Source of the DNA: Marsupella aquatica
Lineage: Eukaryota > Plantae > Marchantiophyta
Length of the DNA stretch: 64,000 nt
Direction of reading: 5' to 3'
NCBI GenBank assembly: GCA_973895155.1
Contig: OZ316898.1
Location: 13,233,659-13,297,658 of the forward strand
The stretch's first letter is position 1. Each line of letters starts with the position of its first letter. A program made the translations under genes and the position numbers. Of the stretch, positions 16,901 through 28,151 are shown one piece after another. The notes under the pieces are model-generated. The model searched no databases, was not told the origin of the DNA, and saw nothing but the letters and a program-made list of their open reading frames with translations.

Positions 16901-18661
16901 TTTTGTCTTTGTTTCCACTTGCCATGATATTAGGCTAATGATGAGAATTTTCTTTTACTAGTATAATTATATATTAACAAAATTGAATCTTCAAACTAAG
17001 TTGCCCAAGATAGTATTACATATGATTATAACTAATGGCTCAATCGAAGCCATCATTTTTCTTGTGACATACTCTTGTTATTGTAGATGAGCTTTTGATG
17101 TCATTCTTATAAATAAATTAAATTTAATGCACAAAAAATCAATACAAATTTACAACACTCCTCTGAATGTACTTTGGCTATATAATTTACCTGGAAGAAT
17201 TGAGCTGGACCCACATACTAGTTGAAATAGTCACGTCAGGCATGTGTGTAAAGAAAGTCGTGAGGGTACATGAGAACAAGTTGATACCATGATTTGAGGG
17301 CCTGCTGTTTTATTTTACTTTTTGTTCCCTTCAATAAGACTGTTGGACTGTTCACAACATATTCCTAAATTAATCATGATTCCCTCAAGACAAACGTGTG
17401 TACTCGGAAAGAAAAAGCCAAAAGTCCCAAAGTCTATATATTGGGCTCCCTATACAGACGCATTTTAGGCTAGAACTGACCATGGCCATTGGATGGTGAG
17501 CTGGTCAAATGAGGTACTTAAGGGGTGACCATCCTGGGGACAGACACGTGTGCAACCTTTGAACCCCAACCCAATCTCAAGGCACCACAAAATGGGTGTG
17601 GAGTTGCCAAGCTGAGGTTGTAGGGTGGGTGGAATTGATGTGGGGAGCCAATGGAGCACCCAAGGGTATCCCACATCCATACTAAGTCTAACCATTTGTT
17701 TTTAGAGTTTAATAAGAATGATAAAATATGAAGTACATTTAGGTCCTTATATAAATACCTTATCTAGTTTTCATGGTAGATGAAAGTTTGAGTAAATTGA
17801 TTGAGTAAATCTAACACTATCACTACTACACTATTGGCCCCTTTTGCGAACCCATACACATCGCAATCAACAAAGGCCCGATAAACAGAATTCCGGCACT
17901 TGCGAACTAACACGCATCGCTACACCATCCCAAATTGCGAAGTTAAAACCTTCGCACGTGGACCATCGCAACGCCATCACAACACCATCACAATTTCCTA
18001 ACCAAATTCCCTCGCAACTTGTCGAACACTTCCGAGTTCAAAATCGTCGCAAACGCTTCGCATTATGCCGCACGGTCCTTTGTTACCGACGTTGGTTTTT
18101 GTGAAGCTGGAAGGTTCGCTACGTGTTTGTGATGGGAATGAGTTTGATATTTGCGATGTCGTGGGGTTGGCAACTAGCGAGCCTTATAAGATCACTCTTA
18201 TGCGAAATAAATTTGATGGGGACTTCCGATCTAAATTGGATCGGAACTTGTGAGTTGGTTTAGGCCAGAAGTTGGGAACCATTTGACTTCGCAACTTGTG
18301 ATGTTACTTGGTTCTATAATAGCGATCCGAGTCATTTTAGAACACAAAGCCTTAAAGGATGGGTCTAAGGCCTTAATTCCTTTTTCAAAATAATCATGAT
18401 TTTGAGAAATAGAGTCCTAAAACAGGCACTAAAATCAGCATATTTTATTGACATTCATCCTTTGCATTTTTAAACTAGAGTTTACAGCAATGTTTGAGAC
18501 AAAATATATTCAAAACCTGATTTTAATAGAATAGACCTCTCAAAACAAGTATAAATATCATAGTCTAGGCTCAAAGGCCATTTACATCTCAAAACTTGCC
18601 ATTAAAGTCTAGTTCTTTGTAGCTAAAACAACAGTAAAAAGTCTTACAAAAATATCCTCAT

Positions 18662-21600
18662 CTAAGCATCTCTTGTTTCCTCAACACTTGCTACAACTCC
18701 TGAAGAGTCAAGTCCAATGATTTCCTCCTCTTCAACTCCTATCTCTGGTATTGGTAGAATGGTCTCTTCAACATCAACATCTGAATCCACCATGCCCTTG
18801 CCGTCATCTTCCTCAATGTTGTCCACCAGGTTTAGAATCCTCCCTTTCAAGACACTGCTCTGGCGCTCATCAATCGCTACAGCAACACAATGTCTTCCTT
18901 GTGCCAAAGAGGAAGACAATCCTGTGCCTGACCCTGAACAAATATCTAGCACCCAGTCTCCAACCTGGCTAAAATGGGTAACTTCCCAATCCAATAATAC
19001 TCTTGGCTTCTGGTAAAAGTTCACCATCTTATTGTCCCCATTGTGTTTCAACTTATTGGTCACAGCTGGACACACAACCACATTATTTCGAGACTCATTA
19101 GTCTCAAAATTGAAATGCTCCAAAGATCGTTTCCCATCCTGATTGTGAAAGCCGATGGTAAAACACTCAAAATTGTTGTTAAGCCTTGCACCTCCTGCAT
19201 TCTTAACATTGTCTTTCACCCTGCAAAAACCAAAACTTTCATTATGAATTTATTTCAAAATCCAACATCATGAAATCATGAATACCAAAAAAATATATTC
19301 ATGTTTTGAAATATTTCTTACCAAATGCAATTCTGGAAACCACTATTACACTCAGCTTTCAAGACAATCTTGATAGCATCGTACTGGTCAATACTATGAT
19401 GAATGATAATTCGCCAAAGATTGGCCTTGGTGACAACCTTGAAACACTGAACCATCTTGGTCACCTCTTCCACACCCCATCCAACATTGTCTTCATGAAG
19501 ACAAGCAGTCATTCCAAACCCATAAGGAATATCTGCCAAAGCCAATGTGTAAGCTCGTGATGAGACTACCTCGTGCAACCGTTGAGCATCATGTGTAAAG
19601 ATATCATAGTATACATCCCCAAACTATGGATGCTCAAAAGCATTAGGGTGGAGTTCACTTCCCTGGGTCTCTCGGCAAGATGTCTTCATTGCCCACCAGT
19701 TCTGTGCTTGTGCAATATGCGCATTGAACTTATCTGGGAAGGACTTCAACTCTTTGCTTTCTTCACTCTCTCCTTTCTTTTTCCGGGAGCTGCTGTCTTT
19801 CTGAGAGAAACAATTTGGGTATTAGATTCCTACATACTCAAGAATAAAATTGTAAAACAAATGCACAATAAATTATCTCAAATAAACATGCACAATCAAT
19901 TATCTCAAATAAACTTACCCAAGTCTGGAAGACAGGAACAAAGTTCTTCAGCACATTATCAGTGCAGTGTTCTGGGTACTTGGTTTTGCAATTCTTCCAA
20001 CTCTCTTCATGAAGGCAGGTAAGAAATGCTTTTTGCACTTGCATTTGGAATTTGTGTCGTTGAAATTCCTGTCCCATCTCTTGAAGAGATAGTTCCTTTG
20101 CCAAAACCCTTTGTAACACTGGACAAATCATGTCTGGATCTTTCAATGCCTGCATGTGTCTCCACTCAGTCAACTTCATATCCTCACACAACATTCTAGC
20201 ATCTCCAGACTTGGATATCTTTTTCTTGGTCTTATCTCCTTTCTGTCCTTTTATTTCACAATTCTCCCATCTGTCAAAGATCTGTCGTATGAAAGACCAA
20301 ACAAGATCCTTACGAAATGCCAACTGAAATAAATTATCATTGGCATTCAGAACCTCAGAATCTTTACGTACACCCCAGTCCTTTAGATTGATTTCAGTGG
20401 CACACTCCTTCTTGAAATCAACATTTGATGAAGATCCATTCTCCACAAATCGCATGTGAATGTAATTCACTCTTTGGATGGTGCTCATCTGTTGACGAAA
20501 TTCAGAGTCTATATTATGACTCCAAGCTAAGTTCCTTGCTTCCTGGATAGATAAGCCTGCAAAGATCCAAGATTGCACTCTCCTGTAGGACTTGTTGTTG
20601 GGAAATTGTAATGCCAGGTCTGCCTTTGCACAAGCAGAATGATTTCCCCCAATCACATAATAGTGGTACTCATTCTTTTTTGAGAATTCAAAATCACCTC
20701 GAGTTGGGCACTCCTTGGGATCAACCAAGAGAACAAAAGGTGTTGCTAGTGGACTAGCTCCAGTTGCTTTCATCCTTGTGGTCAATTGTGTAAGAAAGTA
20801 GGGCTGGATATGCCTTACTTGGTACACTGGCAACTCCAAAGATTTCTCACGGACAGGTGGGTGAAGTTGTCCAATGTCAATAGTGACTGTCTCCTCTTGA
20901 ACTCCACACCTCATCAAAATCCCTTCCTGGTAGATCACCCGAGCATCCATGGACATAGATTGAGCCTTCTGCTCCAAATGAGTGGGGACTTTTTCCAATG
21001 TCTGCTTCTTGGATTTTGGTGGAGTTGGTCCTGCACCTTGAGAACCCTCTGGTCCACGTTTCTTTGATGAAGTCCGAGTACCGGCAGTGCCCTGTGCTGA
21101 TCCTCCAGTCACGGTTGTCCCCTCTTGCGATATTACATTTTGTGAACCACCACCAGATATTGGAGATGTAACAACCATCTTTCTTGCCGGGACAGAGCTC
21201 GGACGAGATCCAGAAGGAGCAGAAGAAGGACCAGACTTTGGTGGACGGGCACTGGCACTCTTCTCTGCTGCTTTTCGAAGAATCTCCCTAGACTTTCGAA
21301 TTGCACTCTTCAGTGTGCTGGCGTGATGTTCAAACACATAACCAGCAATGAGCTGTGCAATCTCATCATAGCTTTCTTCTGCCGACAGATTCTTCACCTT
21401 CTCAATAATCATCTCAATGTCATCAGCCAAGTAACAATGTGCAGCTCTTCCAGAAAATCTCTCAATGTCAACTGCAATCAGTGTAGACGTCTCCTTTGTT
21501 GTGATAAGCATATTGAGTACATCGCCCCCTCGTCGAAAGACATCAATCCGGCCATAATTCACCCAACCAAGACCTCCAGAAGGCAAGGTCTCGTAGATGC

Positions 21601-21733
21601 ACAACATCAAAAAAGGTTTCTTCCATGATTCTGTCCCCAATGATATTGTCCAAGAAGAGTTTCCAAAATCTGTCAAAGGATGCTCAACAAAAATTGAGTC
21701 TAACACCTTCTCCTGTGATTTTGGTTCAACCAT
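18662..21733 (-). pseudogene. ParB/Srx-like domain fused to a beta-class N6-adenine/N4-cytosine DNA methyltransferase (about 950 aa, 3 coding exons, one premature TAG)
   Basis: Exons 21733-19919, 19800-19322, 19220-18662, GT-AG with consistent phases. ParB-like YQVR...PFVLLVDP...YYVIGGNHSACA. MTase motif IV LALADIPYG, then CIW|VKDN..RLNNNFECF, motif X NFYQKPRVLL, motif I VLDICSGSGT and VAIDERQ. In-frame TAG at 19626-19624. Confidence 0.87.
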
Positions 21734-22164
21734 CTTGACTTCCTGAAATCAAGTCCAACATTTCAAAGTTAGCCCTGTTCGTTTGGCAAGTTCAGTTGTA
21801 GAATTTACGTTCATGATTTCATGAAGCAAGGTTCTTACCTTAATAGTGGAGTCAGAAGTTGAATTTGCAGCGCCCGAGCCTAGATGGTTATTCCCGCTCA
21901 GAAGTGTGTCTTAGGTATTTTTCTCCCTGGTTTGGCTTAGCTTATCTCCTCCACCTCCCTGGCCGATGCCCGAGCCGATCGATCCCTCCCAACTTAATGT
22001 AGTTTGTCCCTCTCTTGGTCCCGATTCCAAAGGCCTCCCGATCGTCTCTCCCCCTTCTAATTCTCCTTTCTCTGCACGCCTCCCTTCTGTCGGCGGCTCT
22101 TCCCTTCCACCTGCGTTGGTCGCTCCCTCGGCCGGCGACTCTTGCTCCCTCCCCCGACCTTCAC

Positions 22165-22625
22165 CAATTTCTCCTCCCTGCGCCTTCTACTATTTCTCCT
22201 CCCTGCGCCTTCGACTATTTCTCTCCCCTGGCCTTCGACTATTTCTCTCCCCCTGGCCTTCGACTATTTCTCTCCCCCTAGCATTCGACTGTTTCTCTCC
22301 CCCGGCCTTTGATAATTGATTCTCCCTTGGCGCTTCGACAATTTCTCCCCGGGCGCCTTCGACAATTTCCGCTCACTCCCCCGGCCTTTGACAATTTCCG
22401 CTCACTCCTTGGCCTTCGAAAATTTTGCCTCCCTCCCCAGCCTTCGACAATTTTGCCTCCCTCCCCAGCCTTCAAAAATTTCTCTTCCCCGAAAACAATT
22501 GCTTCTCCCAGGCTTTCGCCAATCCCTCACTCCCCCGACCTTCGACAATTTTGCCTCACTCCTTGGCCTTCGACAATTTTGCCTCCCTCCCCAGCTTGAC
22601 AATTTCTCTTCCCCGAAAACAATTG
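22165..22625. repeat. GC-rich minisatellite (about 24-28-bp units, core CCTTCGAC(T/A)ATTT) upstream of the MTase gene
   Basis: More than 15 diverged tandem units visible. Non-triplet unit lengths argue against coding. Confidence 0.85.
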
Positions 22626-23026
22626 CCGGCTGCCTGGCCTGCTGCGCTCACTCAAAACTCTCCCCAACTCGCAAGCCAACTCTTCCCCTCCCTTCCACGA
22701 TTGATGTGCGCCTGAACAGTCACGCTATTCCAGTCCACTGCAAGCTTCCATTCGAGCTTCCATTCCACTCCGAGATTAGATAGCTGCACCAGATGTTGGT
22801 CCGGCCCTGATTTTCGGTTCCAGTTTAGGGATTCAATCAAAGACTCAATTCAATTCCTATTCAGAACGTACCAATCACTGAGGGAAGCGCTTTCCACAGC
22901 ACCAAACATCAGGCCACCATAGCTCTTTGCCGAGCTTCCTTTCCCGTCACGCTTTGCAGATGCACGCCCATACTCCCAACAGCTGACAGTCCAATTTGTC
23001 CCAAACTTAGCAATTTCCAATTTTTG

Positions 23027-23104
23027 GGTTCATGAATTCATGAACCTTTTGCCACCTCCACTTCACGAATCCAGGAAGGTCGTAACCCTTCATGAATTCA
23101 TGAA
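23027..23104. promoter_or_regulatory. Two TTCATGAATTCATGAA palindromes in the divergent promoter (candidate protein-binding sites)
   Basis: Perfect 20-bp palindrome GGTTCATGAATTCATGAACC at 23027-23046 and a 16-bp copy at 23089-23104. The motif recurs elsewhere in the element. The function is inferred. Confidence 0.5.
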
Positions 23105-23707
23105 AGGGAATCAAGTATCATTTTGAAAGAATCTAGTAAAAAGTCAAAATTTGTGCCCAAAATAACCAATACAACGGGGAAAAGAAATACAAGTAAAAAC
23201 CAAGAAAATGCCTAAAACAGGGGTCATCTAAGACATTTTTGCTTGCAATTGAATAGTATGCAAAAACATGAACAAAAAAGTGGGGTAAAAATGACCAATG
23301 CATTACTGATACACTATCTTAAGATGTTGGCATGAAAACATATGCTTTTAGTAAAAAATAAAATTATGACACCTTTGCTGACAATATTTGAGGAGAAGAC
23401 TTCAGCAATGAGTTATCCAAGTCTCCAAGAACTCTAATGAGTATTAGAAACCTGAAAACATAAGTTAACCTGTGAGATTTGGAGAAACAATAAATTATTT
23501 TCTCATGAAAGATTTCTTTCCTTGTCACTACTTCCTAATAAACGGTGTGGCACATTTCTTAATTTTATTGCTAATTAATATTTTGAGTTATTTTCAAAAA
23601 CCTATAAAAGGGGCTTCTTATTCATGACTCTATCTCATTTCAATTTTTCAGTTTGAGTTCATTTAGTGTTTTAGGTGTTCCCTTGTGAGTTTTGTGCATA
23701 TTTTGAA

Positions 23708-26700
23708 ATGGCAGCCTGTTATGAGTCGGATGATTATTCGGATGGTATTTCGGATGATGTTTCCTTCCCGGACTGTCCTTGTCCTGTTACTTCTCCAGAT
23801 GCTCCTAGCAAAACCACTATTTTGGAGATGCCTCCCCCAACTCCAATGAGTAAGCTGAAAGTCAAGGCTCTTAGTGTACCAAATATGAAGCAAAAATTAT
23901 TTGGTCCTTGTGTGAGTGATCATTCTGAGTCTTCACACTCATCTGAGAGTACAAGTCCCCCTGGCCGTCAAGTATTATCGAATCCTTCTCAAAAGGGGGT
24001 TAATTTGGGGGTGCATTCTGTAGGCCCTCAACATAGTGGAGATGTGAAAAAGAGGACTCATGAATTCATGAAGGCCAGATCTGGAGATGTGCCAAACAGG
24101 CCCAGTCAAACCCTGAAAGTGGATTTTTGTGCACTACGGGAAAGTCGTGGTGTGCAACATGCACCAATGAAAGAGATTGAGTATTCTCGTCCTACATCTT
24201 TCAGATTTCAAGGAGGAGTGAGAGTGGAAACAAGGAGGCCTCTTGGAAATGAGATGAATTCGAACAAGGAGAGGATCAATTTGAGAAGATCTCCAGGGAA
24301 CTTTGATCGTTTGGCTGAGGTTGGAAGCGGATCTAAGTTAGGATACAACAAGGGCAAGAAGAAGATCTTTGAAGAGATTCCAAACAAGAGGGCAAGAGAG
24401 TCAACCCAAGGTGGTTTCTTTGGGGATTCAAATGGAAATCGATCAAACTCACTCCTTTTGAGAGTGAAGGAGGAGCCATTGAGTCCTCGCGGGCGGGTGA
24501 GGAGGGGCTTGTCTGCATACCAACTCGATAAACTTGTGGAGATATCATCTTCAATCGAAGAATCTTCGTCTGAGAGTGAAGGAGAGCATGCAGAGAGACC
24601 TATGATGGCTAAAAAACGACCGTCAAATCTCCGCTTGTGTGAAACAAAGATGACAGATGAGGATATCAAGAAGACAAATCATAAGTACTGTTGTCAACGT
24701 CATTGTCTCCTGAGTCTTTCACCAAAACAAATTCGTGAAGCACGCTCAAAGTTTTTGAGGGAAAAATCTCAGGATCGATCTTTATCGTTGTAGTGGCTCG
24801 TCAAGCAAGACGGAAATGAAGAGGGGAGGTCCAATGTCACATACATGATTGGACAAAGAGACGTGTGTCGAAAAGCTTTCAAGATGGTCTTTTGTGTAGG
24901 AAATGAAAGATTGAATAGGATCAAGAAGCTAGGAAATCAAGATCTTGCTTATCCTAGACCGGTTGGTCGACCTCAATCTGTGAGAACATTAGTGTTGAGT
25001 TCTTGGTTGAAGTCATTTTTTGAGACTCGTGTGGAGACTCTACCAAATAAAGATGTTTCACATTTGCCTGATAATTATTCCAAGCTAGAAGTTTGGAAAA
25101 TATATGATTCAAGCTATGTGATCACTGACGAGTCATCCAAAATATCATATCGGCAATTTTTGAAAGTATGGTCACAAGACTTTGGGCACGTGAAGATTCC
25201 TCTTGTGAATCGTTTTAGTGCTTGTGCGGACTGTGAAGAATTCAAAACCATTCGAGACAAAGGAGTCTCCGAAACTGAAAAACGTAAGTCATTTTTATTT
25301 TGTTGTTTTGAACATGTCTTTGTATTAGATAATTGTCAGGAAATCAATTGAGGAATGGCTAAACATTAGGAATGAATTTCAAGTTAACAACTTTGCTCGA
25401 CCATTTTTGGATTGATTGCAGGGAGAGGAGAAATAATGTTACAAAAACATCGAGAGCAACAATCAAAAGAGCGGGAAAAACTGGCAAAGCATCGAAAGAA
25501 GTGTTTCACAAACCCAGAAAAATATTTGGGAGTTGTGATTGATGGAATGGATCAAAAAAAGACTAGATTACCCCATTGGCCACGTCCTCCAAAATCCGTC
25601 GATGAGTCCTGCTTAATCCAAATGCATGTGGTTGGTTGTCTTCTTTTCCACGGAGCACTATTTTCTAGGGTTTTCCTTAATTATCCAATTCTCCATAATG
25701 ATGGAAATCTTACCATTACTATTTTACAAAGAGTATTCCTAGAATATCAAGAGAAGTATGGGGGCCTTCCACCTGTTTTTTACCTTCAGCTTGACAATAC
25801 AAGTAGGGAAAACAAAAACAATTTACTTTTCACATATCTTCACATGCTGGTACAAAAAAAGGTATTTCGAAAAATCAAACTTGGATTCCTCTTAGTTGGA
25901 CATACCCATGATCAAATAGATCAGATGTTCAGTAGGTTTTCAAAAAGGCTTGGAAGATTTAAGGCCTTTACCTATGATAGTTTATGTAAGATTATTCGAG
26001 AGTCTTACCAACCTCACCCTGAAATTACCCTTTTAAATGAGACATACGATTTCCGAAAATTTGCTTTCTCAGAGCCTGCTATGATCAGAGAAAGGATACG
26101 AAATGTTACGTTCCATCACCAGTACAAAATTTCTTTTGCTTGTGAAGATGATCAAGTTCCAACACAATGGGGGAAGAAATTTTCCACCGACACTATTTGG
26201 AAACCAGAAGGAGGTGTTAAATTGTTGAAAGAAGACTTGCCACTAAAGGTGATTGGTTGCTCGGATGGGATGCCACTTGTGAAGAAAGGAGACAAGAAAC
26301 AAGATGAAGGAAGGGTTGGAAATCAAGCTCACATATCATCTTCGGGAAAAATGACCCTGTCCGAAATGGATGATTGTTTGAATGAAATTCAAAAAGGTAT
26401 ATTTGCAGCTCAGATATTATTCTCTGAAGAAGAAGTTGTTTGGTGGACTTCTTTTTTTGAGGAACAAAGAGAATTCAATCAATCTCTCTTGCTTGAAGAA
26501 AGACCTTTGATCTCTCCATTTGAATGGCCCAAGGCGCAAGGGGATACAAATGTTGAAGCTGATCTTGGAGCTGAACCTCTTACAACTATATTGAATGAGG
26601 AAGAAATTGAAGAGAGAGTGTACGGTCCAACTAGAGATATTTATGTTGGTCCATATCGAAATCAAGAAAAGATTGATGCAGAGAAGGAGAATATGGAAGG

Positions 26701-27169
26701 TGATTTTTCGGATTTGGAAATCAACACATTTATTTCTGTGGCCGGAGAAAAGTCTCAATTATTTTGGGTGGCTAAAGTGGAAAAAATTGTTCTTCGCGAT
26801 GAGGCTCACATCCCAAAGATTATCTCAGTTTTGTGGCATGCAGCAAAGAAAGGATCTGACCCTTGGAAAGGAAAATATCTGCCAGAAGTATTGAGTTACG
26901 AGAAGAAAAAAAGTGGACGAGGCAAGGGAACCTTGAAACCAGTTTGGTTTCATCAAGACCTTGATCTGTCTTCAACTACGGTGTTTGCATATAATTTTAT
27001 GCTAACAAGGTCTGATACTCTTTACAAGAAAACAATAGATCGTATTAAAATCCGACTCTCAGAATTTCTCAAGGAGGAGAAAGACCAAGAAGGTGAAGGT
27101 AGCATAGTAAGAAATTATCAAGAAGAAACTTCAATGGAAGTTACTCTAGAAATGAATGGTAGGAATTGA
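23708..27169 (+). pseudogene. DDD-type transposase (Sola1-related; resembles the family I recall as DUF7869), about 1107 aa, one premature TAG
   Basis: Exons 23708-25283 and 25422-27169 (phase-1 intron). In-frame TAG at 24791-24793. Cys motifs KYCCQRHC, VCRKAF, FSACADC. Catalytic-type motifs VIDGMDQKK, YLQLDNTSRENKNN and FLLVGHTHDQIDQMFS. Confidence 0.85.
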
Positions 27170-28151
27170 GATTTACCAATCTTTGGCGATTTTGTCAAAC
27201 ATTAGTATTTGCAATTTATTATTATTTGAGTTCCTGGCAAACCATAAATGTTGTGAATGATGAATTCATGAATCATATTGAAAGAAGTTTGGCATTTTGA
27301 GAATGTCCCTAGTGTGAGTGGTCTTGTTTGGGAATTTCAAAAAACAAAATATCAACTAAAAGAGTTACCTTGTAGAATCTCATATATTTTGAAGTGCTTT
27401 ATAAATTCATCATTCCCTTATTGTGAAGAATAGTTTTACTTAGCAAATGAGCCAGAGGATCCAACAAATTGCAAAATCCTTAGGAAATCTTGCCCATCTT
27501 TTAAAAACTTTACATACGTGGGATTTCAATGAAGTTTAGGGTGGTATTTCAGGGGTGAATGTGTTATTGAGCCAATTGAAGGTGTGCAAGTACAAATTGC
27601 AACTTTGAAATATGTGTTATTTAATAATTAAATGTTTCCCACAACCAGTTTTGTGATTTTGAATAGTCAAAATGATAGCCTATATTGTGCTTTTTGGCAA
27701 GTTTTGAGTTCTTGTAAAAAAAAGAGCTTGTTTTTAGATGCATTTTTTGCCTTTTTCCATATTTTTAAGGTTTTTTATCAATAGTTCTTATAGATTGGGC
27801 TTATTACCCATCCTTTAAGGCTTCGTGTTTTAGTATTTCCTAGTTATCCAAGTTCGCAATGGGTTCGCACTTTCATGGGAACACGACTTTCAATCAATGT
27901 TTTGCAAGGGATTTCTCTTGGCAGTGGACCCAATGTGGAAGGCAAATGTTTTTTATAAGATCCATGCAAGTATATAGGTGGATATACCAAAATGTTAGGG
28001 CTTGAATTAAGGAACCCAATACACAAGAGGGGTGGCATATCTGATGCCGGCCAAGTCACCCTACTCAACATATGCTATCCTAGCTAAGCTCCAACACGGC
28101 TAGTCAGTGACATGTATCTCATGAGCCCGGTCATGAGATTCTACAAGCTAA

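Follow-up and report, generated by a model that had tools for sequence, protein, structure and literature searches.

Known systems

The closest described counterpart of the element analysed here is Sola1-1_Ec32 of the brown alga Ectocarpus, for which the available part of the published account (Genome Biol 2025, PMC12477816) reports a Sola1 transposase and, on the opposite strand, a ParB-like/N4C/N6A methyltransferase protein that is hypothesised to bind and modify its own transposon. Self-marking has also been proposed for algal counterparts in the parts available of two accounts (PMC12477816; bioRxiv 10.1101/2025.02.11.637652), and in the red alga Bostrychia the accessory genes PAG2 and PAG3 of Plavaka/CACTA transposons include an N6-adenine methylase with the same self-binding idea, but the transposons belong to another superfamily and the genes encode two separate proteins, a ParB-2OG oxygenase and a methylase-SET protein (bioRxiv 10.1101/2025.02.11.637652). 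Virus-borne Mariner elements are a precedent for a DNA transposon with its own DNA methyltransferase (Bao and Jurka 2013, PMC3627910), but these enzymes are of the C5 or Methyltransf_26 type, are paired with endonucleases, reside in giant-virus genomes and are without ParB. Fusions of ParB to a methyltransferase are known from phages and prophages, as are methylases of ParB-terminase loci (Iyer et al. 2015, PMC4738411), and in the fusions ParB is N-terminal to the amino-methyltransferase, as in the plant protein described below. Marchantia DN4MT1a/b and the bdelloid N4CMT have the beta-class PF01555 fold in common with that protein, but they contain TSPPY/SPPY where its family has D-x-P-Y; N4CMT has a chromodomain, and the available portions of the published accounts of these enzymes do not speak of a ParB domain or of a position inside a transposon.

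The initial annotation knew of no description of the arrangement in land plants and treated it as novel, and this does not stand, since the same pairing and the same hypothesis are published for Sola1-1_Ec32. The Marsupella element is therefore a new land-plant example of an arrangement already reported in a brown alga in 2025 and not a new kind of element; no published description of a Sola1 ParB-methyltransferase arrangement was found for land plants. As far as the published description extends, Sola1-1_Ec32 of the brown alga measures 21.5 kb, has terminal inverted repeats (TIRs) of 282 bp and encodes an accessory protein of 1,104 aa, whereas the present element, in a streptophyte of the land-plant type, has 9.5 kb, 24-bp TIRs and 950 codons, and the two accessory proteins are likened by description and not by sequence. 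Element-specific palindromes and co-divergence of the two genes are not mentioned in the available part of that account.

Element boundaries and copy number

The element covers 9,489 bp, positions 18341–27829 of the window, which is the whole 64-kb stretch of Marsupella aquatica DNA that was analysed. It is bounded by 24-bp TIRs at 18341–18364 (+ strand) and 27806–27829 (- strand) that match at 23 of 24 positions, the right one having one mismatch to the left one, which starts with AACAC and ends with GGGT. A TTAG target site duplication (TSD) is found on both sides, at 18337–18340 and 27830–27833, and the TIR has only these two matches in the window, against 0 expected. The cut-and-paste unit of about 9.5 kb proposed initially is thus confirmed, and so are its two head-to-head genes, a DDD-type transposase on the + strand and a spliced accessory gene of about 950 aa on the - strand, for both of which the gene models were recovered.

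Each gene has, as previously stated, a single nonsense codon, TAG at 24791–24793 in transposase exon 1, where the related element L001 has Q, and TAG at 19624–19626 in accessory exon 2, with no frameshift in the accessory gene. The SAM-binding motif II of the accessory gene (VAVAIDE, 18886–18866, - strand) has in addition an E-to-A change, and the window copy cannot make either protein and is a dead copy. Hundreds of pieces that are 90–99% alike are present in contigs from four public runs, indicating a multi-copy family; all four runs behave as DNA contigs, and no spliced contig is found in them. Related elements were obtained from Riccia (L004), Calypogeia, one sequencing-run assembly contig and two metagenome contigs, and are mostly intact; intact relatives had been considered plausible, and L001 and L002 have uninterrupted reading frames in all three accessory exons.

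The transposase gene

The transposase gene has two exons and 1,107 codons. Exon 1 (23708–25283, + strand) contains a CC-x3-C motif, and after an intron at 25284–25421 (GTAAGT...CAG) exon 2 (25422–27169) encodes the DUF7869 catalytic core (Pfam PF25273, 2.3e-50) with DGMDQ at 25541–25555, LDNTSRENKN at 25790–25819 and GHTHDQIDQ at 25898–25924. In the available part of its description the Sola1-1_Ec32 transposase has the catalytic motifs DG-x-x-Q, DNT-x-x-ENKNN and VGHTH-x-QIDQ-x-FS almost residue for residue, as well as the N-terminal CC-x3-C and VC-x2-AF, all in the same order, and the table entry for its family agrees with the AAC termini and 4-bp TSD found here. By the DUF7869 match, these motifs, the TSD and the termini, the element is assigned to the Sola1 superfamily.

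The accessory gene

The accessory gene consists of three exons on the - strand with 950 codons (951 with the terminal stop), and all its introns are GT-AG. Exon 1 (19919–21733) has 605 codons and is followed by intron 1 (19801–19918, GTAAGT...CAG), exon 2 (19322–19800), intron 2 (19221–19321), in which the palindrome TCATGAAATCATGA is located at 19268–19281, and exon 3 (18662–19220). The product is a four-part protein, in which exon 1 encodes, according to an AlphaFold model (pLDDT 77), a PH-like domain (aa 20–145), a disordered linker (aa 168–254), and a ParB/Srx N-domain (aa ~270–416) continuing into a predicted helical DNA-binding domain up to aa ~567, and the C-terminal part is a beta-class amino-methyltransferase. 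The ParB part is not recognized by Pfam, but Foldseek matches the ParB-like module to Noc/ParB (7e-6 across ~280 columns), and its structural matches are PadC (Z 9.5), KorB (Z 8.1), pNOB8 ParB-N (Z 7.7) and, with the HTH region included, Spo0J (Z 5.7), in agreement with the ParB/Srx-like segment that had been noticed upstream of the methyltransferase. The sequence VIGGNHS (20656–20636) belongs to a GG-x-H-[ST] motif standing in place of the ParB GERR arginine motif, and CTP-clamp behaviour is therefore unlikely.

Motif IV (LADIPYG, 19539–19519) in exon 2 precedes QKP (19015–19004) and motif I (VLDICSGSGT, 18952–18923) in exon 3, confirming the beta-class order IV, X, I. The predicted N6_N4_Mtase match was found, with exon 3 alone giving 4.6e-6 and 27.2 bits (cut-off 26.7 bits) and 1.2e-6 to the CcrM NCBIfam model, and natural relatives reach up to 65.7 bits with the Pfam methyltransferase model. 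The modelled fold of P0021, a natural contiguous relative, matches CcrM (2.8e-14) as well as MboIIA, RsrI and M1.HpyAVI (TM 0.81), and the methyltransferase model matches Adineta N4CMT (8s9m) with 6.8e-12. Motif IV reads D-[IVLFAP]-P-Y-G in 19 of the 21 aligned rows of the family, with Ile, Val, Leu or Phe for the first proline of canonical DPPY, and none of the members examined has TSPPY or SPPY of the DN4MT1 type. Against solved enzymes the family profile gives 6e-16 to 2e-12 for N6A and 5e-7 for N4C, with 5.6e-16 for DpnA/HpyAVI among the PDB sequences. The earlier preference for 6mA is thus supported, and the sequence leans towards N6-methyladenine as the modified base, with N4-methylcytosine less likely.

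It is rather unlikely that the domain does not methylate at all and is a SAM or DNA-binding reader, in which case the protein would be only a ParB-like DNA-binding or anti-silencing factor. DIPY is non-canonical compared to DPPY, the alignment shows DIPS or DIPH in a small number of sequences, and 6mA in land plants is contentious. However, N-[IL]-P-Y occurs in functional Erm/KsgA-type N6-adenine methyltransferases. Even at about 30% identity the family retains Asp, Pro, Tyr and Gly in motif IV together with QKP and the G-S-G-T of motif I, and DPPY in its canonical form is seen in members that are further removed. In the model the methyltransferase core reaches a pLDDT above 90 and shows the whole beta-class fold.

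Palindromes and proposed function

A 14–16-bp palindrome, own to each element, is present in most elements examined, L006 having no palindrome family by the criterion applied. The window has 6 sites, all within the element, against 0.12 expected, and the numbers are 13 against 0.04 in L001, 4 against 0.01 in L002 and 21 against 0.08 in L004, where all are inside the TIRs. In the window three sites (21811, 23030 and 23090) are in the divergent intergenic region (21734–23707), which also holds a 25–28-bp tandem array (22149–22592), and another is at 24058 in transposase exon 1.

The domain folds, the private palindromes, the conservation of motifs IV and I, and the pairing and selection described below together make it fairly probable that the window holds a dead Sola1 copy from a multi-copy family whose partner gene, with its ParB-like part and methyltransferase, marks the DNA of the element itself. 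By analogy with ParB-parS and KorB-operators, dimers of the ParB-like module would bind the element's own palindromes and bring the methyltransferase to the element DNA, on which it would write N6-methyladenine or, less likely, N4-methylcytosine. Such a non-5mC mark might identify element copies and either counter host silencing or gate transcription and transposition, and elements of this type might also be vehicles for host amino-methyltransferases.

The ParB-like module could instead be mainly a KorB-type regulator of the divergent promoter that sets transposase and accessory expression, with methylation secondary. This is unlikely: palindromes do cluster just upstream of the accessory start or between the genes in the window, L001 (4863–5201) and L002 (86–211), and KorB is the second-best structural match, but palindromes are also found in intron 2, there in L001 (7847) and L002 (2849) too, within the transposase-coding region and close to the ends of elements, and a regulatory role would not account for the conservation of catalytic motifs in the fused methyltransferase.

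Related elements and selection

A DUF7869 gene is head-to-head with the ParB-methyltransferase gene in L001, L003, L004 and L006, the pairing being kept wherever enough flank is present. Their joint occurrence within TIRs elsewhere, proposed initially as a check, is seen in Riccia, where the TIRs of L004 are similar to those in the window (AACAC start, TTTAAAG inside, GGGT end) and the TSD is TAGA (4 bp). Transposase and methyltransferase identities of 60/65, 38/41 and 30/34% indicate that the two diverge in parallel. The decay of catalytic motifs in all copies with dN/dS near 1, named beforehand as counter-evidence, is not what was found; the motifs are conserved and pN is 0.25–0.36 with a saturated pS of 0.74–0.90, pointing to purifying selection on both genes. 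The ParB-methyltransferase gene is a long-standing partner gene of the transposase family. That it was instead captured recently as Pack-type cargo, or is a host gene that happens to lie between TIRs, is very improbable; transposons often capture host fragments and no transposase lies closer than 10 kb to the homologue in Chara, but this reading is contradicted by head-to-head pairing in five independent elements with parallel divergence down to 30% identity, by the Riccia pair within TIRs, and by the pairing published for a brown alga (PMC12477816).

Among the phage matches of the methyltransferase domain is a gene annotated as 'ParB-like partition protein', but identities are only about 25%, with E values from 1e-6 to 3e-4. 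The plant protein differs from phage fusions in its introns, PH-like N-domain and long linker, and there is no sign of a recent transfer. Bacterial or phage contamination or mis-assembly, as the prokaryotic type of the domains and these phage matches might suggest, has a negligible probability, bacterial contamination having already been dismissed initially, and is contradicted by canonical GT-AG introns at conserved positions, the eukaryotic transposase as partner, the lack of any match of a full-length relative to 50,697 phage genomes, the many copies across four plant runs, and homologues in the Riccia, Calypogeia, Chara and Ginkgo assemblies.

Boundaries and setting of the element

The 9.5-kb element at 18341–27829 of the window is a decayed land-plant Sola1 transposon with a ParB-methyltransferase partner gene, and elements of this kind are already known. 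It is bounded by terminal inverted repeats (TIRs) of 24 nt with one mismatch, located at 18341–18364 and 27806–27829, which are the only two matches to the TIR in the 64-kb window (expected 0.00). The TIR begins with AACAC, and TTAG adjoins both element ends as a 4-bp target site duplication (TSD), so the TIR/TSD-bounded unit with two head-to-head genes proposed in the initial annotation is real. Contigs from four public sequencing runs, which represent two organisms, contain hundreds of pieces that are 90–99% alike, and in X1 260 of 878 pieces are at least 99% alike, indicating that the family is multi-copy with recent members. The left flank (17844–18303) has several inverted repeats of 31 nt, all imperfect, and the element is probably nested in another repeat.

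Transposase gene and assignment to Sola1

The transposase gene is located on the plus strand and consists of two exons, 23708–25283 and 25422–27169, with an intron of the form GTAAGT...CAG and 1,107 codons in total. A TAG is found at 24791–24793, where the related Logan contig L001 has a glutamine. The second exon matches Pfam DUF7869 at 2.3e-50 while the N-terminal exon has no match in Pfam or NCBIfam, and no mention of the term 'DUF7869' was found in the available literature.

The Ectocarpus transposon Sola1-1_Ec32 (Genome Biol 2025, PMC12477816) was put in Sola-1 by its authors, with Repbase Sola1-1_PPa as the best blastp match; the available parts of that article, the supplement of which prints the transposase, give it a 4-bp TSD and AACCG termini. 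A 4-bp TSD is likewise found in Sola2. Compared by eye with this one published Sola1 protein, at the level of motifs and with no alignment statistic, DGMDQ of the window transposase corresponds to MDGANQ, LDNTSRENKNN to VDNTVAENKNN, and VGHTHDQIDQMFS to VGHTHIQIDQIFS, and both proteins have CC-x3-C and VC-x2-AF in the N-terminal part and an identical order of these motifs. The element was filed under Sola1 because the motifs correspond, the TSD is 4 bp and the termini read AAC, and as judged from its sequence it is a DNA transposon of the Sola1 superfamily, with DDD transposase motifs, a 4-bp TSD and TIRs.

The nonsense codons of both genes (24791–24793 and 19624–19626) are TAG. The one in the transposase, at the position of the L001 glutamine, is consistent with a C-to-T change from CAG to TAG, as expected from deamination of methyl-cytosine.

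Structure of the accessory gene

The accessory gene is encoded on the minus strand by three exons, 21733–19919, 19800–19322 and 19220–18662, and both introns have canonical GT-AG borders. It comprises 951 codons including the terminal stop, with one internal TAG at 19624–19626, where the window copy reads HP*FGD and the relatives HPDHGD, and no frameshift; the earlier count of one nonsense codon per gene and no frameshift in this gene is thus borne out. All of the motifs named in the initial annotation were recovered on the minus strand, with motifs IV, X and I in the order given there: the ParB-like VIGGNHS at 20656–20636, motif IV (LADIPYG) at 19539–19519, QKP at 19015–19004, and motif I (VLDICSGSGT) at 18952–18923, all read from the sequence.

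The exons were joined by script for codon counts and motif coordinates only. In the searches the window exons were used one by one and with their stop codons left in place, and the whole protein was represented by relatives that occur naturally in one piece or as annotated proteins (P0021, P0042, P0065 and others). P0021 is a contiguous ORF of 416 aa with 50–56% identity that reads through the counterparts of exon 2 and exon 3, which supports the splice junction. No intron-skipping joints were present in the contigs of the four runs, where no run recorded as RNA covers the stretch, and expression is not thereby excluded.

The methyltransferase domain

Exon 3 alone matches the Pfam family N6_N4_Mtase (PF01555) with 27.2 bits, just over the gathering cut-off of 26.7, and natural relatives score 33–65.7 bits; it also resembles CcrM in NCBIfam. 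Exons 1 and 2 have no match in Pfam or NCBIfam. PDB sequence matches of the window exons alone were weak or spurious, for example scFv16 light chains matched through a GSGSG-like motif, and were discarded. A HMMER search with exon 3 against 1.84 billion representatives gave 222 relatives at E ≤1e-3, among them several metagenome ORFs and the whole natural proteins Gb_37443 of Ginkgo, GBG66685.1 and GBG86584.1 of Chara braunii, and KAL3696720.1 of Riccia sorocarpa. The plant relatives are annotated only as hypothetical or as 'DNA methylase N-4/N-6 domain-containing'.

The methyltransferase fold expected in the initial annotation was obtained with the relative P0021, whose AlphaFold model has a core pLDDT above 90 and matches the beta-class amino-methyltransferases CcrM (2.8e-14), MboIIA, M.BceJIV, RsrI and PvuII, and further M1.HpyAVI (TM 0.81) and the bdelloid 4mC methyltransferase N4CMT (6.8e-12). 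By the Pfam score, the permuted motif order and the modelled fold of this relative, the C-terminal part of the accessory protein is assigned to the beta-class N6_N4 DNA amino-methyltransferases.

Motif IV has the form D-[IVLFAP]-P-Y-G in 19 of the 21 aligned rows that reach it, the exceptions being DIPS and DIPH. The D-I-P-Y of the window thus departs from the canonical (D/N/S)-P-P-(Y/F), and canonical DPPY is restricted to the distant members P0108, P0091 and P0104. Only the first proline varies, whereas the D, the second P, the Y and the G are conserved, as are QKP and the G-S-G-T of motif I across the family. A catalytically dead methyltransferase is not the favoured reading for this Sola1-borne lineage. 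Active N6-adenine methyltransferases of the Erm/KsgA type use N-[IL]-P-Y. All three accessory exons are open in L001 and in a further contig, L002, and the intact relatives that had been thought plausible do occur. Non-synonymous divergence (pN 0.25–0.36) is far below synonymous divergence (pS 0.74–0.90), although pS is saturated and the values are no estimate of dN/dS.

In the window copy motif II reads VAVAIDE (18866–18886), with an alanine in place of the glutamate conserved in the V-x-V-E-x-D of close relatives, and this is likely to be a second inactivating change besides the TAG. With both changes the window copy of the gene is read as dead. Of the enzymes with solved structures, those for N6A match the family profile at 5.6e-16 to 1.7e-12 and those for N4C at about 5e-7, and the predicted base specificity leans to 6mA, which is a lean and not proof.

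The Chara protein GBG86584.1 (P0023, 1,825 aa) has a C-terminal methyltransferase domain at aa 1566–1733, with DLPY as motif IV and GGGHT as ParB-like motif, and weak matches upstream to other methyltransferase models.

The ParB-like module

The fold of exon 1 was predicted together with 19 relatives (pLDDT 77), and the model contains a PH-like domain (aa 20–145), a disordered linker, a ParB/Srx N-domain and a helical DNA-binding domain. Its Foldseek matches to Noc and ParB have values of 7e-6 to 1e-4, with a probability of 1.00 over about 280 columns, and in VIA-align the matches are PadC (Z 9.5), KorB (Z 8.1), pNOB8 ParB-N (Z 7.7, 210 residues), sulfiredoxin (Srx, Z 6.9) and Spo0J (Z 5.7). 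The ParB/Srx-like segment that had been read upstream of the methyltransferase is therefore matched by fold. The Pfam ParB model has no match in the window exons or the relatives, and only a weak match to DUF6551 (0.019) was found, in the Ginkgo relative. GERR, the CTP-binding arginine motif of chromosomal ParB, is replaced by GGNHS, the form in the family being GG-x-H-[ST]. The modelled fold of exon 1 is thus ParB-like, yet a CTP-clamp mechanism is doubtful.

The PH-like domain (21733–21300 of the window) is beta-rich with pLDDT above 90, and its best matches, to the PH domain of TFIIH p62/Tfb1, Rtt106 and SSRP1, are weak (Z 4–5). It is conserved in close relatives and missing from the Ginkgo and Chara proteins.

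Pairing of the two genes

A DUF7869 gene and a ParB-methyltransferase gene stand head to head in four further loci, namely L001, L003 (Calypogeia fissa), L004 (Riccia sorocarpa) and L006 (a JGI metagenome contig). The linkage looked for in other copies was thus found, and the Riccia pair is enclosed by TIRs like those of the window, with AACAC at the start, TTTAAAG inside and GGGT at the end, and with the TSD TAGA. The identities of transposase and methyltransferase to the window are 60 and 65% for L001, 38 and 41% for L004, and 30 and 34% for L006. The accessory gene is, on this comparison of sequences, a long-standing partner of the transposase, and its recent capture is ruled out by the recurrent pairing and by identities of the two proteins that fall together. 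No transposase was found within 10 kb of the Chara gene. A recent origin from a phage is not supported, the full-length relative P0108 having no match in 50,697 phage genomes.

A second DUF7869 transposase gene is present in Riccia sorocarpa CM100795.1 (L004, 18000–22200), at a distance of about 5 kb to the first element and with no methyltransferase match within the locus.

Relation to known systems

The arrangement was held to be new in the initial annotation, but the same pairing and the same hypothesis have already been published for Sola1-1_Ec32. According to the available text of PMC12477816 this element is 21.5 kb long and has an accessory gene opposite in strand to the transposase, and its authors suggest that accessory proteins of this class bind to the transposon that encodes them and modify it epigenetically. 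The window likewise has, on the strand opposite to a Sola1 transposase, a single protein with ParB-like and amino-methyltransferase domains, the accessory proteins being compared by the description in the same text. In Bostrychia, Plavaka elements have accessory genes beside inverted-repeat arrays, and the proteins encoded are an N6A-methylase-SET fusion and a ParB-2OG-oxygenase fusion (bioRxiv 10.1101/2025.02.11.637652), and ParB-linked methyltransferase clades are found in chlorophytes, chytrids and haptophytes (Iyer et al. 2015, PMC4738411). The arrangement and the hypothesis are already published for brown, red and green algae.

No land-plant description of a Sola1 element with a ParB-methyltransferase gene was found in the literature, and what is new here are the members from land plants and charophytes (liverworts, Ginkgo and Chara), the observation that the accessory gene has long diverged in step with the Sola1 transposase, the conserved non-canonical D-x-P-Y-G motif, and palindromes that differ between elements, one of which keeps its place in intron 2.

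A link to the Marchantia host 4mC methyltransferase DN4MT1 is not supported. Motif IV of DN4MT1 is TSPPY (bioRxiv 2021.02.12.428880) and N4CMT likewise has SPPY, whereas the window family has D-x-P-Y and no SPPY among the members examined; N4CMT further has a chromodomain, for which there is no match in the window exons or the relatives. The literature consulted on DN4MT1 and N4CMT mentions neither a ParB domain nor a location in a transposon.

Palindromes and possible self-marking

Most of the elements examined carry palindromes of 14–16 bp. In the window TCATGA-WW-TCATGA has six sites, all within the element (0.12 expected). They are spread over the region upstream of the accessory gene, the space between the two genes, intron 2, transposase exon 1 and the part that follows the transposase. 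L001 has 13 sites of TCAAGC-NN-GCTTGA (0.04 expected), L002 has four of TCATAC-NN-GTATGA (0.01 expected), and the Riccia element has 21 of TGTATG-N4-CATACA, all inside the TIRs (0.08 expected). Nine sites of CCATGA-N3-TCATGG are found in the second DUF7869 element of L004, and L006 has no palindrome family by the criterion used. The site in intron 2 is common to the window, L001 and L002. Neither the window palindrome nor the window TIR core was found in L001–L003, and by sequence comparison the palindrome and the TIR core are private to each element in this set. The palindromes are plausible candidates for parS- or operator-like targets of the ParB-like module.

A self-marking mechanism is plausible and in line with the published hypothesis. 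It is possible, though in our estimate rather unlikely, that land-plant Sola1 elements carry out an active and element-private self-marking, in which the ParB-like module, co-evolving with the TCA...TGA-type palindromes of its element, would recruit the fused, non-canonical D-x-P-Y amino-methyltransferase and place 6mA or 4mC on the copies of the element, as a shield from host 5mC/H3K9 silencing or for the timing of transposition; the module would then be an ancestral core component of Sola1 that brown algae have as well, and host amino-methyltransferases might have arisen from it. If active, such a system would mean that a land-plant transposon encodes a writer of a non-5mC DNA mark and directs it through recognition sites of its own, which would give the dispute over eukaryotic 6mA and 4mC a concrete case that can be tested.

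Three of the six window palindromes (23030–23103 and 24058–24071) have an AATT centre and contain GAATTC, the site of M.RsrI, a beta-class enzyme among the structural matches. Since GAATTC is absent from the palindromes of the relatives, this overlap is probably a coincidence. Between the divergent genes there is also a tandem array (22149–22592), which is covered far more thinly than the genes by contigs from the four runs and may therefore be specific to the window copy or to few copies. It consists of about 18 units of 25–28 bp, with a consensus that contains GCCTTCGAC.
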